Notes: generated by a model not told the origin, from the sequence alone. A stretch of DNA of 64,000 nt from Pavona decussata (GCA_977016875.1 CDRNST010000185.1:1054001-1118000); one strand, 5' to 3'. Counted from the stretch's first letter, positions 9,181 to 36,118 are shown. A program made the numbers and translations.

Positions 9181-9612
9181 TTTAAGAAAATTTGATTCTC
9201 AGGTAAAAATATAGTTAGTCTAACAAACGTCTTGCAATACACTGTGAAAACTACTGACAAGTTTTTTCTCGCATATATTTCTATTTTAACATTTATTTGT
9301 GGCAGTCTTTACAGAGAACAAACACAAATACTTAAAAGAATAGGATATAAGGGCAAAGATTTAGATTTGTGAGTATTATTATATTTATTCCCTTGTCTGT
9401 GCAAATTTTTTTAAAGATAGTTGTTTAGTTTATTTCTGTACTGATTGCTATGAGAAGCATATAACCCCGAAGCGATTAGGTCTGTCGCAAAGCTGGGTTT
9501 CATTAGCGCGCGAGATTAGCCAATCAGAATTTACTTCCTAATATGGATACACGCGACCATTGCGTGAGCCTCGCGCGAGTGCTCAGGGAAAAGCTACATC
9601 GCCTTGTAAACA

Positions 9613-10813
9613 ATGTCATCGGTGCGCTGCAAAAGAAAATTGCAGTTTGTTGAGGTCAAGTTTGACCAAAGTGGGACCCTTATTCAATCTAAACGCCCTA
9701 GAGTGACTGCGACCGAAAGCCCCAAATGCAACTTCGCGAAGTTAGGAAGTTCACGTAACGATGCGAGCGCAAATGCTCAAGAAAATTTGTCACTCCGGCA
9801 GCGAGGATATTGTTTTATCGCTCCGCGACCAGTCCAGCTGTGTGCAGAAAATTACCAAAAGACGAGTAATAACCCTGTAAATGGCCTTCAGTCGGACACT
9901 TCGAACATAACGGGGAAAGAAACGCCAATAAAGTCAAGCTACACAACATCCACTACGCCGATCCATTCCGATGTCGGCGATAATTGGATTCAGCGAGCTA
10001 AAAAAGTTGTTTCTGCCAAAGCTCCAGGATTTCAATTCACATTGTGGAAGGCTGGCCACGGTGAAGTATGTATGGTGTCAAAAGCTGACTTGTCTGGGTA
10101 CGATCCAAACTTGTTAGCGAATGGTTGTGCTCCAGTGTGTTTACATGTTTCCTCGGACGGGAACTACGCCATTAAAGTACTCTTTCGTGAAGCATTTAAA
10201 GGCGCACTTAAGGATGAAGGTGATTTGACCTCTCTCCTTGACATTATGAACAGCTACAAAATTTGTCCTGGCCTGAAATCGCCATCAGAGGTCAACTCGG
10301 ATTTGAAACGGACATGGGGATTCCCTTTCCAAAGAGTCGACAGCCATAAATGTTTACTGCTACATCTACCTGGCAACAAAAAGCAAGTACCTGGCTCTGC
10401 ACTCTTTGATGTATGTACAGAATGCAAGAAACTTTACTGGAAACTGAGTAATATCGCGAAGAAACGTCGAAGTAACGGAAGAAATCGTGTGCAGAAGTCT
10501 TCAACGTGTAATTGGAAGTTCCTAAGTCCGAAAAGTGCAAAGAAAAGAGTGCGTAATCTAACGGCGGATGCGCGACGACTAACGAAGGAAGTCGAAAGAC
10601 TGAGGAAAAAACTTGACGTTTCTCTCTCTCCTGAGTTGTCTAGTGAGATGAGGCAAATTACGTCCAAAATAAGTTCACAGTATCACGAATGTTTGGACGA
10701 TATTTTCGAGGAAGCGGAAAAGAAAACGAAAGGAAAGGGCGGACTGATGAAAGAAATGTGGAAGCAGGATGTGGACGACAGAAAGGCCTTTTGGAAAGAC
10801 CAGTGTCGAAACG
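9613..10813 (+). CDS. P-element/THAP9-like transposase, exon 1 (gene continues at 28841)
   Basis: 400 codons + 1 nt ending AAC G|gtagg; phase matches the acceptor at 28840. Contains a CPG..S..C...CxxC Cys cluster and a coiled coil, but no recognisable THAP motif. Confidence 0.8.
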
Positions 10814-12704
10814 GTAGGCGTCAAAACTTTGATTTTCCTGTAAGTGTGAAATTTTTAAAATTAACCTCTCTGAAAATCTCGGTATTTTGCTTTTGGGAAC
10901 AAACTGTTTTATCATTTTCTCTTTTATCAGTTCTTATATATTTACTTAATCAGAATTGTTACATGTACATTCGCTTGCGTTACAAAATATTGTTATGTAA
11001 AATAAATTTTGCCTCCTAGAATTTCAGTCAACCTTGCTCTGCTCAGAGTTTAAGATAATTTCTTATCGTCATATTTCTGACCGCTTGTTTAAAAGGAGCC
11101 ACTGCAAGTAACACTTTGATAACAGTTAAATTTAGGCCTGTATGCTTTGGTCACGCAATAACAAAACCCGCACGAAACGCATAGATCTAAAAAATGTCTT
11201 GACTAGATCTAGAATAAAGTCTTTGAAAAGTCTAGTTTAGGTCTGGCGGCTTTTTTCAAAGAAAAGTCTTGGAAAGATCTATATTCTGAGCTAAAATGCG
11301 AGACATTTCTAGACATTTTGACAGCTAGACATTCTTAGCTCGAAACTAGACATTCTCAAGACAATTGTTTCGAAAGAGGTTTTCCCAGAAGAAAGGTCTT
11401 GGAATGTCTAAAATTGTCTAGAAAGAAAGGCAACCACAAGACGTTTCAATCAACACGTGGTCAAAGGAACGTGATGACTGACAATAATTTCCGGCTTGTT
11501 TTATGGTACGTGATCCCAGCAGCTTCGAACGCGGCCGGCTCGGGTCGCTTCTGCGAAGCTGTAAAAATAGTACTAGCTGGTGTTGCAGCCTTTAATTGGT
11601 TGACAGGAAAAAAACAACAAATAATACTTAAGATTAAACCTTTTTATTCGAAATAATATGAACTGCACATTCAGTAACAGTTATATTTGCAAAATAGAAT
11701 TAATATTGTTTCTTCACAATTAAGAGGACTAATTTAGTAATTAAAGAGCTTTCGTACAAATATCGCTTCTATTACCAACAAGCTTTAATAAATAGGTATA
11801 CAAATATCATGCTTCTTCATTAGAGGATCAACTAAAGAGCTATTAAATTACTGTACAAGTATCGCTTCTTTCTAAGATTTCAGACATCTTACCGAAGAGT
11901 CGTGCAGCACTCGTGCAAGTCTACGAAAACTTGTAAATACTGTAAACTTTGTTATAATATAATTGCATAATTCACTTACGTGCTGCGGCTTGCTGATCCA
12001 ACTTTTTCTTGGCAAATATATGCGGGTTAAACCGGGTTTGCAACCCTGGAAGCAGAGCTCTCCAAAATGACGCTCCTTCCACAAGCGATTTTCCCGTGAA
12101 ATAAAAAAGCATCAACATGAGCTTGCCGCGTTATGATACCTTGCGTGTACATAAGCTTACAATATAGCGACAATTTAATTACGCTTCTTTGACATTCTTC
12201 GGCGAGATCGAATGACGGCCTAGAGAACAAACTGATAAGCCTACTTGTGTCTCATCGACCCAAAATGATCTTTGACTTGTTTTATAGTTAATTAAACGAT
12301 AAAATCAACAGGACCTACCATTTGAACTGCTTTAAATGCAGTTACAAAATCATGTTTTTATGATAGGCAACACCGTTGTGCGGCGTGCAACAGCAACTAT
12401 TAAATGAACGAAACTGTAGTTTTTTAATTTTTTTGGATAGTGACCCTTTTTTTCGCGAAAATTTCGTGTCATTATGGTAGTAAGACTGAAAATGCCCGTC
12501 GGTCAGAAATTTTCACAGAATTTGGTGTGCTCAAGCTCGGATATTTCGTCGACTAGAAAACAAACATTTGTTCCTTTTCGAACCATACTGACTCCAGAAA
12601 ACGTCGCCGTTTCTGAGACTTTCAGTCGAACTTTTCATTTCTGACTGCCGGGCATTTAGTAGCTTTTAGTCTACTTGCACCACTTTAGTGCTAAGAAAAG
12701 AGCA

Positions 12705-34034: not shown

Positions 34035-34072
34035 GGAAAACATGGAAAAATTGTTTTAAATGCATCTGATGA

Positions 34073-35535
34073 TTAGTTGGCAACCTTCAGCTTATTCCTT
34101 AACATAACTTGTCTGTCCTGTGTTTGCCTCTCATGATGCTCCTCCAGACATTTCTGCGCTCTGACAAATTCATTGCACCTGATGTTGAAGATTTTGCGCA
34201 ATAGTCTATTATAGAGATCTGCTTTTATGCCTGGGGAAATTTTTATGCCTATGGATATCAGTGCTTCATTAAATTTCCTATTAATGCCACCGTCACTCAA
34301 CACTTGTTGTTCGGCAACCTGTAACAGCCAATTTAATTATTAGTTAAAAAATCAGGAAGCATTAGTGACCCTTTAACTCACAAGGCATGTTGAACGAACC
34401 AAGATCACGCAAACATCTATTTGTGTAATGCACCTGCAAATGTGTTGGTGTGTCACAGAGGAGAGATCTTTTTACTGCAGCTGTCTAAAGGTAAGGTTCT
34501 TATTCCTTTGAAAAGGCAACCATATACAGTGTAACCATGTTTGATGAGAAGAAGCATATGCCTCTGTGCTAACCTATTCAGGTACAAATTGATTTCCAAT
34601 TCGTGGATACGCAAAGGTAAATGCAGTAGAGTGAATGGTTAAATGAAAAAGAGAAATAAAAGTAATGCTATTGATATCTCAAGCATTCGTTAAGAGGCCT
34701 AGGGGTGATAGTTTGCTTTAATAGTTCTAAACTAACCTTGAACAGTCTTCTACCAAATGAGTGATACCCATTTTGATTCACGACTCTTCCGAACACTTGC
34801 GTAAACTTTCGCAGAAAACAAATCAGTTCCACCTTCAAAACAAGTAGGTTTCCTTCATCGAGATTATGCAGGAAAAATTGGGAGGTTTGTCTTTTCGTGA
34901 TCCTCCATTTTCTCAATAGCGTCTATCTCCTTCAATATCATGTTCTTAAGGCTCTGCTTAGACCTTGAAAGTGGTTGGGCAATTTGTCGTAAACGTTTTT
35001 TCAGTTTCAACGCCGCCGCAGAACCTAGCTTTAAAAGCGAAACATCGTCCTCAGAAATATCGACACTCTCTCTAGCAACCATAACTGTTGAACTAGCTTC
35101 CTGACTCTCCCTCACAAACTTAAAACCAGCGCTCGCAACACTCTCCAAAATACACGACACTATCTCCTTACCCCGGGATGGAACTGCCTTCACTATTTCC
35201 TCCATATCTCCGCTAGCTAGCACCTGCCTAACTAACTCGTACCATCTCACCTGTATTAACGCATGCTTGTCAAACGAACCCTTAACTCTTTCGGAAAATA
35301 AATCAAAGAAATGGTCATTGCAACGCTTCACTAACCCACGAAACGGTCCACTTGCCTCCAGCACATCCACATCGGCTGGCGTGCTCGAATTAAAAAAAAA
35401 CCCAAAGTTCGCTCTAGCTACTCTGAAGATCCTTTCCACCACAACCTCTTCCGAAAGCGTTTTCCCGGCTAGACTGATCGAATTTATCTTCGCTCTCGAT
35501 AGTTTTTTGACGGTCTCTTTGCGAGCGGCCGCCAT
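34073..35535 (-). pseudogene. P-element partner gene (ORF2), ~347 aa, 2 exons, one 1-bp frameshift
   Basis: Exon 1 35535-34737 (AAAATGGCG start; an in-frame ATG also at 35559; AAG|gttagt donor). Exon 2 34318-34073. Removing one base from the A5 run at 34873-34877 gives continuous ...KTNLPIFLHNLDEGNLL... Lies inside the P TIRs, convergent on the transposase. Confidence 0.75.
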
Positions 35536-36118
35536 TTTGTTTGTTATGAATCCTTCCATATTTGGGCAAAAAATACATTCGTGCTCCTGATTGGTCGACT
35601 AATAAACCCCAGCTTGTTTCAAAACATTATAGCGGAATTTAGACGCTTCGGGGTGATATGCTTCTGTTGCTATATATACAGAAGTTCGCCTTGAAAAAGA
35701 ATAATAACAACAGAAAAAAAAAATATATCAATAGGAAGCTATAGGAGGAAGTACCCGTCCTGAATATTTACCTTCAGTGTACGTACATGTAATATTTTGA
35801 TACTTGATTTTGGACTCCCACTCGCACAATCATGTAGCTTAGAATGCCTCTTTTACTGAAATGGGTTTTTGGGTTCAAAAGGATACCTTACTACCTTGTA
35901 TAACAGGTAGTATATGTATTCACATAAAGCCGAGTATAATTTAAAGTTTGATTTTGAAGCGGCAGGGGTATTTTGCAGAATGCTGAATTCATAGAAGTCC
36001 TTTGATGGAATGGCTGCCATAACAACAACTTAAAGCTAAATGTCTGTATAACCAGTGTTTAACCCTAGACAGTTAAAAGAGAAGTGCTTAGACCTAAATA
36101 ACTTCATTCTTTGCTTAA

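Follow-up and report, generated by a model that had tools for sequence, protein, structure and literature searches.

Structure of the element

The stretch of DNA analysed here (the window) comprises 64,000 nucleotides of the stony coral Pavona decussata (GCA_977016875.1 CDRNST010000185.1:1054001-1118000), and positions are counted from its first letter. Between 9452 and 35666 it holds a genuine and recently mobile DNA transposon, a young member of the P superfamily. Two genes lie tail to tail within the element: ORF1 (+ strand, from 9613) codes for the transposase, while ORF2 (- strand, from 35559) begins 107 nt inward of the right end and is directed toward ORF1. The transposase stops soon after its catalytic centre, and the C-terminal half of the ORF2 product is most likely a homologue of the C-terminal domain (CTD) of P/THAP9 transposases. 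The features of the element are as follows (in splice sites, a slash marks the exon boundary).

9445-9451, no strand: left target site duplication (TSD) TTGCTAT, identical to the seven bases at 35667-35673
9452-9474, + strand: left terminal inverted repeat (TIR), from inverted-repeat pairing (22 nt, 95% complementary)
9475-9612, + strand: left subterminal region 5' of the ORF1 start, read directly from the sequence
9613-10813, + strand: ORF1 exon 1, N-terminal region with a coiled coil; open frame, donor G/GTAGG at 10814, homologous exons in sister families
10814-28840, + strand: ORF1 intron 1 with a 17.5-kb nest; junction 11166/28695 in other copies
28841-29168, + strand: ORF1 exon 2, helix-turn-helix and first catalytic D; acceptor AG at 28839-28840, frame fits exon 1
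29512-29938, + strand: ORF1 exon 3, N-terminal part of RNase H with the second D; PF21787, exon end is an RNA joint
30518-30751, + strand: ORF1 exon 4, putative start of the insertion domain (GTP-binding-domain region); flanked by RNA joints
31105-31327, + strand: ORF1 exon 5; RNA joints, GT..AG
31674-31720, + strand: ORF1 exon 6 (47 nt); RNA joints and frame arithmetic
32000-32287, + strand: last ORF1 exon, catalytic E (ALETIF) and stop; RNA contigs without a joint, translation
32288-34072, no strand: spacer between the ORF1 and ORF2 stop codons; covered by RNA contigs, contains a palindromic insert
34073-34318, - strand: ORF2 exon 2 (81 aa and stop), third conserved helical region (NIRCNEF) and LRNKLK; acceptor TTACAG/ at 34319-34320, phase 0
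34319-34736, - strand: predicted ORF2 intron (418 nt), donor AAG/GTTAGT
34737-35559, - strand: ORF2 exon 1 (274 codons in intact copies), with one extra base near 34871 in the window copy
35560-35643, - strand: right subterminal region 5' of the ORF2 start, sharing two motifs with the left end
35644-35666, - strand: right TIR, from inverted-repeat pairing and comparison with other copies
35667-35673, no strand: right TSD TTGCTAT, matching the left duplication

The TIRs pair over 22 nt with one mismatch (9453-9474 with 35644-35665), and addition of the terminal base places the ends at 9452 and 35666. The first base of the left TIR is G in the window copy; other copies begin with 5'-CAGAAGCATAT. 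Seven-bp TSDs flank six copies, namely the window copy and five others that have their own duplications beside 5'-CAGAAGCATAT ends, which confirms the initial annotation of a single element bounded by TIRs and a 7-bp TSD. TSDs of the P superfamily are 7-8 bp long.

About ten related copies, 95-99% identical, were found in the genome (602 Mb in 1180 contigs searched). ORF2 is present in every full-length copy of the element, and among the exons and stretches examined no copy has both genes fully open. Internal-deletion derivatives also occur, as among classical P elements of Drosophila: one still has 80 bp from the left end, the 3' part of ORF1 (31775 onward, in the last exon) and ORF2, and another is a 640-bp miniature. 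In other copies 11166 is joined straight to 28695, so the canonical length of the element is about 8.3-8.9 kb and the 17.5 kb between 11167 and 28694 represent a nest of foreign elements within intron 1. The nest contains a tnp2-type ORF (17549-20425) and an element with identical direct repeats of 300 nt (21182 and 27048). The window copy is thus a crippled one, both by this nest and by a frameshift in ORF2. The palindromic insert in the spacer (about 32978-33066, arms 32973-33002 and 33022-33051) is absent from the other genomic copies and from RNA contigs.

Both subterminal regions (9475-9612 and 35560-35643) carry the motif AGCTGGG(G)TTT..ATTAG and the sequence CCAATCAG at similar distances from the ends. 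On the left these take the form of a AGCTGGGTTT..ATTAG motif and a CCAATCAG box, both of which recur at the right end. The shared motifs fit putative mirror-image promoters of two inward-facing genes.

ORF1 codes for a transposase that ends after the RNase H domain

Four GT..AG introns of ORF1 are seen as joints in contigs of four public runs (29938/30518, 30751/31105, 31327/31674 and 31720/32000), and the presence of spliced joints means that these contigs derive from RNA. The positions of introns 1 and 2 were derived from GT/AG sites together with frame arithmetic. In all four runs, contigs proceed from 31997 without splicing past the stop codon (32285-32287) to 32444-32456. The transposase therefore ends 56 aa after the catalytic E of its ALETIF motif, in agreement with the approximately 55 aa proposed from the sequence at the outset. 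The seven exons add up to 916 codons including the stop. All searches were run exon by exon, and the lengths of 915 codons for ORF1 and 355 for ORF2 are products of coordinate arithmetic.

The catalytic D, D and E motifs can be read in the ORF1 translation. TNP-like_RNaseH_N (PF21787) scores 22.7 bits on exon 3 of the window copy, below its cut-off of 24.6, and 30.9 bits on the corresponding exon of a sister family. Exon 2 is 32% identical to a canonical P-like transposase of the same coral (E 1.4e-10), and exon 4 aligns weakly (E 0.001) with the GTP-binding-domain region of that protein. The insertion-domain profile PF21788 has no match on the window exons, while the canonical coral family scores 68-69 bits. 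No THAP domain was detected by Pfam in exon 1 (468 aa; E up to 0.1) or in the sister family, and phmmer comparison of two transposase exons of the sister-family locus L027 with PDB sequences gave no P transposase match. Overall, ORF1 shows the P/THAP9 transposase architecture of a helix-turn-helix and a split RNase H fold, with a putative insertion domain, and ends at the point where the RNase H domain of the Drosophila enzyme passes into a disordered linker.

Some features of the transposase genes deserve separate mention. Exon 1 of P-like transposases (9613-10813 in the window, L027:694-1899, and L046:3779-5182 on the - strand) has a common Cys-containing region, LCPG ... C..C, followed by the coiled coil; this region may be a DNA-binding module of a type not yet classified. 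In sister families b and c (L027:5235-6104 and L024:7747-8781, both + strand) the last transposase exon continues for about 230 aa beyond the E motif. This extension, which is absent from the window family, has a conserved GSNAC ... DSH pattern (Cys/His, protease-like) and no Pfam or PDB sequence match. ORF1 intron 3 contains an inverted-repeat pair (29952-29984 and 30095-30127), around which RNA-contig depth is 10-100 times that of the surroundings and many contigs have loose ends (29899-30127); the pair looks like an inserted high-copy miniature element.

Gene structure of ORF2

The ORF2 frame of the window copy is broken by one extra base near 34871. This base is absent from RNA contigs of all four runs and from genomic copies L002-L004, and in copies without it the first-exon frame stays open for 296 aa (e.g., in L003). 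A canonical donor after ..LFK matches in phase 0 a canonical acceptor 418 nt downstream, and splicing between the two would extend the protein by 81 residues. ORF2 homologues of other lineages consist of a single exon. Since the predicted exon 2 is homologous to the C-terminus of the single-exon ORF2 of a sister family (tblastn E 1.3e-4; profile E 3e-12), the intron is probably real. The initial annotation described two spliced, tail-to-tail genes: the orientation and the splicing of ORF1 are borne out, the latter by RNA joints, and the intron of ORF2 stays a prediction. The four ORF2 strings quoted there are all present in the sequence. The spliced product is predicted to have 355 aa, with an N-terminal helical domain followed by an all-helical CTD-like domain.

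The C-terminal half of a modelled ORF2 homologue resembles the CTD of P transposases

The fold was modelled with AlphaFold (AF2) on the ORF2 of L027, a single-exon homologue from a sister family, using the family alignment and no templates. The model is all-helical and confident over residues 80-420. A Foldseek-independent search of 48,161 representative PDB chains with this model placed 6p5a_B first (Z 9.1, root-mean-square deviation (rmsd) 2.9 A), matching 115 of its 118 residues to model residues 246-421; the runner-up on the same residues had Z 6.7. The chain 6p5a_B comprises residues 617-734 of Drosophila P transposase, i.e., its CTD. Because the CTD hypothesis had been set beforehand, the weight of this match lies in the identity of the top chain and not in its score. 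A shape search of the ESM Atlas returned THAP9/TNP clusters in its top four rows, including a THAP9_C cluster with a template-modelling (TM) score of 0.50 over 134 residues (rmsd 3.0 A, query residues 248-425).

The window ORF2 is linked to the modelled family by tblastn (E 1.5e-5 for exon 1 and 1.3e-4 for exon 2) and by the ORF2-family profile, with values of 1e-29 for copies of this element and 1.3e-10 for the frameshifted exon 1 of the window. By visual comparison, three conserved ORF2 blocks of alignment A1 are colinear with CTD consensus regions, which a 2026 preprint gives as ALEYIAGYVARKL, SRGGLIKPS.. and FYFKTRIHF.. (10.64898/2026.08.31.747927).

The all-helical C-terminal half of ORF2 thus appears, as far as the model goes, to be a structural counterpart and most likely a homologue of the P/THAP9 CTD. 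The fold match itself was computed, while common descent is what we infer from it. The proposal that ORF2 supplies the domain absent from the transposase is supported by both top ranks; of the profile or structural similarity to the CTD that it predicted, the structural kind was found and profile methods were silent.

Canonical P-like elements of the same coral also appear to be split

The P. decussata genome contains P-like elements of a more canonical type, with scores of 87 bits for PF21787 and 69 bits for the insertion domain. The transposase of these elements aligns with Drosophila P (6p5a_A) in three colinear stretches (E 6.9e-16) and ends about 60-70 aa after the catalytic E, at the RNase H boundary. 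The convergent second ORF of these elements has a C2H2 finger, which is followed by YMAGY, NRGGL and YVRVR motifs, and it is colinear with the ORF2 profile over 176 columns (hhalign P 3.6e-4). Since the canonical elements too pair a CTD-less transposase with a convergent ORF, the split architecture seems general among the P-like elements of this coral rather than peculiar to one family. An AlphaFold model of the canonical second ORF was not used (predicted local distance difference test, pLDDT, 45; 5-row alignment), and complex prediction for this ORF with residues 150-662 of the canonical transposase scored 0.01, which gives no verdict for or against binding.

At L054:13455-17424 a second two-gene P-like element, this one of the canonical type, adjoins the first on the same public contig. 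Its convergent ORF of 356 aa contains NRGGLFFVSDE and SLRKGLK.

ORF2 is paired with P-like transposases across families and species

Sister family b (L025/L027) of the same genome has a transposase 30-60% identical per exon to that of the window and a convergent single-exon ORF2 of 448 aa. The family profile found at least 35 ORF2 loci in the genome, at least 22 of them within about 10 kb of P-like transposase exons and convergent with them; the paired loci include the named lineages a, b and c and single loci on contigs C60, C104, C56 and C123, so that the pair is present in four or more deep lineages of the genome. The same convergent pair was found in Acropora digitifera and in five public loci (L044 and L053-L056), where ORF2 is only 21-27% identical. 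In four of these five, the transposase aligns to the final residue of the window ORF1, with 65-330 bp between its stop and that of ORF2; for L056 the alignment ends six residues short, about 3.7 kb from the ORF2 stop. Co-occurrence of the two proteins in other genomes, which the initial annotation had suggested looking for, is thus observed. The possibility that ORF2 is a chance neighbour or a captured host gene was rejected on account of this conserved pairing.

An exhaustive profile search yielded 878 ORF2-family clusters at E up to 0.001. All of the best 150 are at most 486 aa long, and these are therefore stand-alone proteins and not tails of long transposases. A homologue search with a broad alignment mostly returned the same close coral proteins. 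ORF2 homologues are overwhelmingly linked to convergent P-like transposases, with one solo copy found.

This solo copy, in Desmophyllum pertusum (L042, MU826828.1), is a family-b homologue without a P-like transposase within 10 kb on either side and could be a domesticated copy. A different arrangement is seen at G000:C194:715004-730460, where six identical partial ORF2 copies of lineage c form a tandem array with a 2,924-bp period beside a P-like transposase; a seventh copy is located at 737116.

A transposase probably divided between two genes

The observed anatomy of the element, the structure of the ORF1 transcript, the fold match and the conserved gene pairing are in our opinion best explained by a P-superfamily transposon whose machinery is split over two genes, with ORF2 supplying the counterpart of the CTD in trans; we consider this explanation probable. 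The two inward-facing genes, each beginning just inside a terminal repeat, would share the transposition machinery, and the ORF2 protein would join the transposase-DNA complex in trans through a putative binding interaction. Its CTD-like domain would take the position of the fused CTD of Drosophila, flanked by one subunit's RNase H domain and the other's insertion domain, and would be in contact with both the transposon and its target DNA. ORF2 might be required there as a subunit, or it might modulate integration, and we rate the two roles about equally likely.

In the Drosophila strand-transfer complex a flexible disordered linker carries the CTD, which is lodged between two subunits (RNase H domain of the first, insertion domain of the second) and makes contact with transposon DNA as well as target DNA in the active complex (PMC7776569). 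The depositors of 6P5A built it as a separate chain. A domain that even in the fused enzyme works away from the rest of its polypeptide could plausibly be supplied in trans.

Several results weigh against this explanation. Pfam returned no meaningful match on the ORF2 exons and no family match on 72 ORF2-family members, and neither THAP9_C (PF22824) nor Tnp_P_element_C (PF12596) was matched by 26 members at E up to 10, by 46 members at E up to 1 or by ORF2s of other lineages; six-frame genome searches with both profiles were silent as well, but so were their controls, and these searches are not evidence of absence. ORF2 profiles built from alignments A1 and A3 found no P transposase among PDB sequences. 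Foldseek, proposed initially as a check, returned nothing from PDB for the ORF2 model at E up to 0.001. The modelled L027 protein is 22-26% identical to the window ORF2, and Z 9.1 lies below the caution line for helical folds and can be reached by chance in helical domains. Language-model features of ORF2 exon 1 of the window family point, with low recognition, to CATCHR-type tethering subunits (a weak lead); for the second ORF of the canonical family they gave no look-alikes. No spliced ORF2 joint was seen in RNA contigs, which cover the intron, and if the intron stays unspliced the third helical region is lost. The lack of any signal at the level of hidden Markov models, the Foldseek result, the Z value and the CATCHR look-alikes would suit an ORF2 that is an accessory protein of separate ancestry from the P CTD, sharing with it a generic helical-bundle likeness and serving, for example, to bind chromatin or a host factor, similarly to the second ORFs of Harbinger or MuDR. 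We find this quite improbable, as P/THAP9 comes first in both of two independent shape searches, each covering a very large library, the transposase lacks exactly the CTD, and three motif regions are, by visual comparison, colinear with the CTD consensus of the preprint. Another way to dispense with a divided transposase is to suppose that ORF1 acquires a fused CTD through an unseen isoform or a missed downstream exon, ORF2 being a separate matter. The RNA evidence consists of contigs and not reads, and contigs drop rare isoforms. Yet the last exon continues past the stop in all four runs, the 1.8-kb spacer contains no + strand ORF of at least 70 aa, and homologous transposases reach the same final residue in four of the five public loci; the canonical coral transposases stop at this point too. 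A missed CTD exon was rejected on the grounds of the unspliced contigs and the stops of the homologues, and a fused product in general is hardly credible.

Closer to the divided transposase is the view that ORF2 is derived from a CTD but works purely as a dedicated regulator, a brake on integration or a limiter of copy number that transposition does not need, parallel to the truncated repressors of P. According to the preprint, excision and integration by THAP9 and Drosophila P persist without the CTD, and loss of the CTD from THAP9 favours integration (10.64898/2026.08.31.747927). A CTD supplied in trans therefore need not be required, and a regulatory role is as likely as a structural one. 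Extra N-terminal domains of ORF2 (including the C2H2 finger of the canonical family), the intron-retaining ORF2 RNA and the internal-deletion copy L021, which retains ORF2 without the transposase, also speak for regulation. A mere brake is easily lost, however, and the pair has been kept across deep lineages and species; in addition, the CTD of Drosophila P makes DNA contacts in the active complex, on the transposon as well as on the target (PMC7776569). On balance we regard a purely regulatory ORF2 as unlikely.

Comparison with known systems

The coral element shares with Drosophila P and human THAP9 the TIRs, the 7-8 bp TSD, the helix-turn-helix, the split RNase H fold with an insertion domain (putative in the coral element), the D-D-E residues and an all-helical CTD of the same fold (here modelled on the sister-family ORF2). 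Drosophila P and THAP9, however, are single genes encoding one polypeptide with the CTD on a disordered linker, whereas the CTD-like domain of the coral element belongs to a separate convergent gene, which starts on its own by the other TIR and adds an N-terminal domain. Unlike these two proteins, the coral ORF1 has no THAP domain that we could detect.

PIF/Harbinger elements encode a DDE transposase and a Myb-like ORF, whose non-catalytic product is thought to act with the transposase on DNA. They resemble the coral element in having two proteins, the second one without catalytic residues, but the partner there is a Myb/SANT DNA-binding protein that forms no part of the transposase architecture, and the superfamily and the TSD differ. 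In maize MuDR, mudrA and mudrB are convergent and transcribed inward from promoters in the terminal repeats. The two inward-facing genes are a likeness to the coral element; mudrB, in contrast, is not known to be related to any domain of MURA or to occur outside Zea, while the coral pairing is deep and widespread.

The P element itself encodes non-catalytic proteins, the 66-kDa and KP repressors, which modulate transposition, one of them being produced by intron retention (PMC7776569). ORF2 is likewise an element-encoded protein without catalysis. The repressors differ from it in being N-terminal transposase fragments from the same gene, while ORF2 most likely corresponds to the C-terminal domain and has a gene of its own. 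We found no description of a P-type transposon with the CTD on a separate, facing gene in the literature searched.

Implications

In the 2026 preprint, the CTD of P element transposase and human THAP9 is called functionally uncharacterised, and its truncation is said to alter integration and not excision (10.64898/2026.08.31.747927). A CTD present as a separate polypeptide in many independent, recently active families makes its role testable by omission of one gene. Partners of the separate gene product can be pulled down, and a tree can show whether fusion or fission took place.

Annotation is affected as well. Among coral genes listed as "uncharacterised", many of those encoding 350-480 aa (878 clusters at 50% identity) belong to P-like transposons as their second gene, and a coral P-like transposase of truncated appearance is probably a complete protein.

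More tentatively, anthozoan P-like transposons in general may have a two-subunit transposase, the CTD being provided in trans by a second chain, joined to a variable N-terminal module (helical in the window family, a C2H2 finger in canonical elements) that sets targeting or dosage; we offer this as possible rather than probable. If true, the fused form seen in Drosophila P and THAP9 would either have arisen by gene fusion or be ancestral to a gene fission, and the coral elements would constitute a natural separation-of-function system for the CTD.

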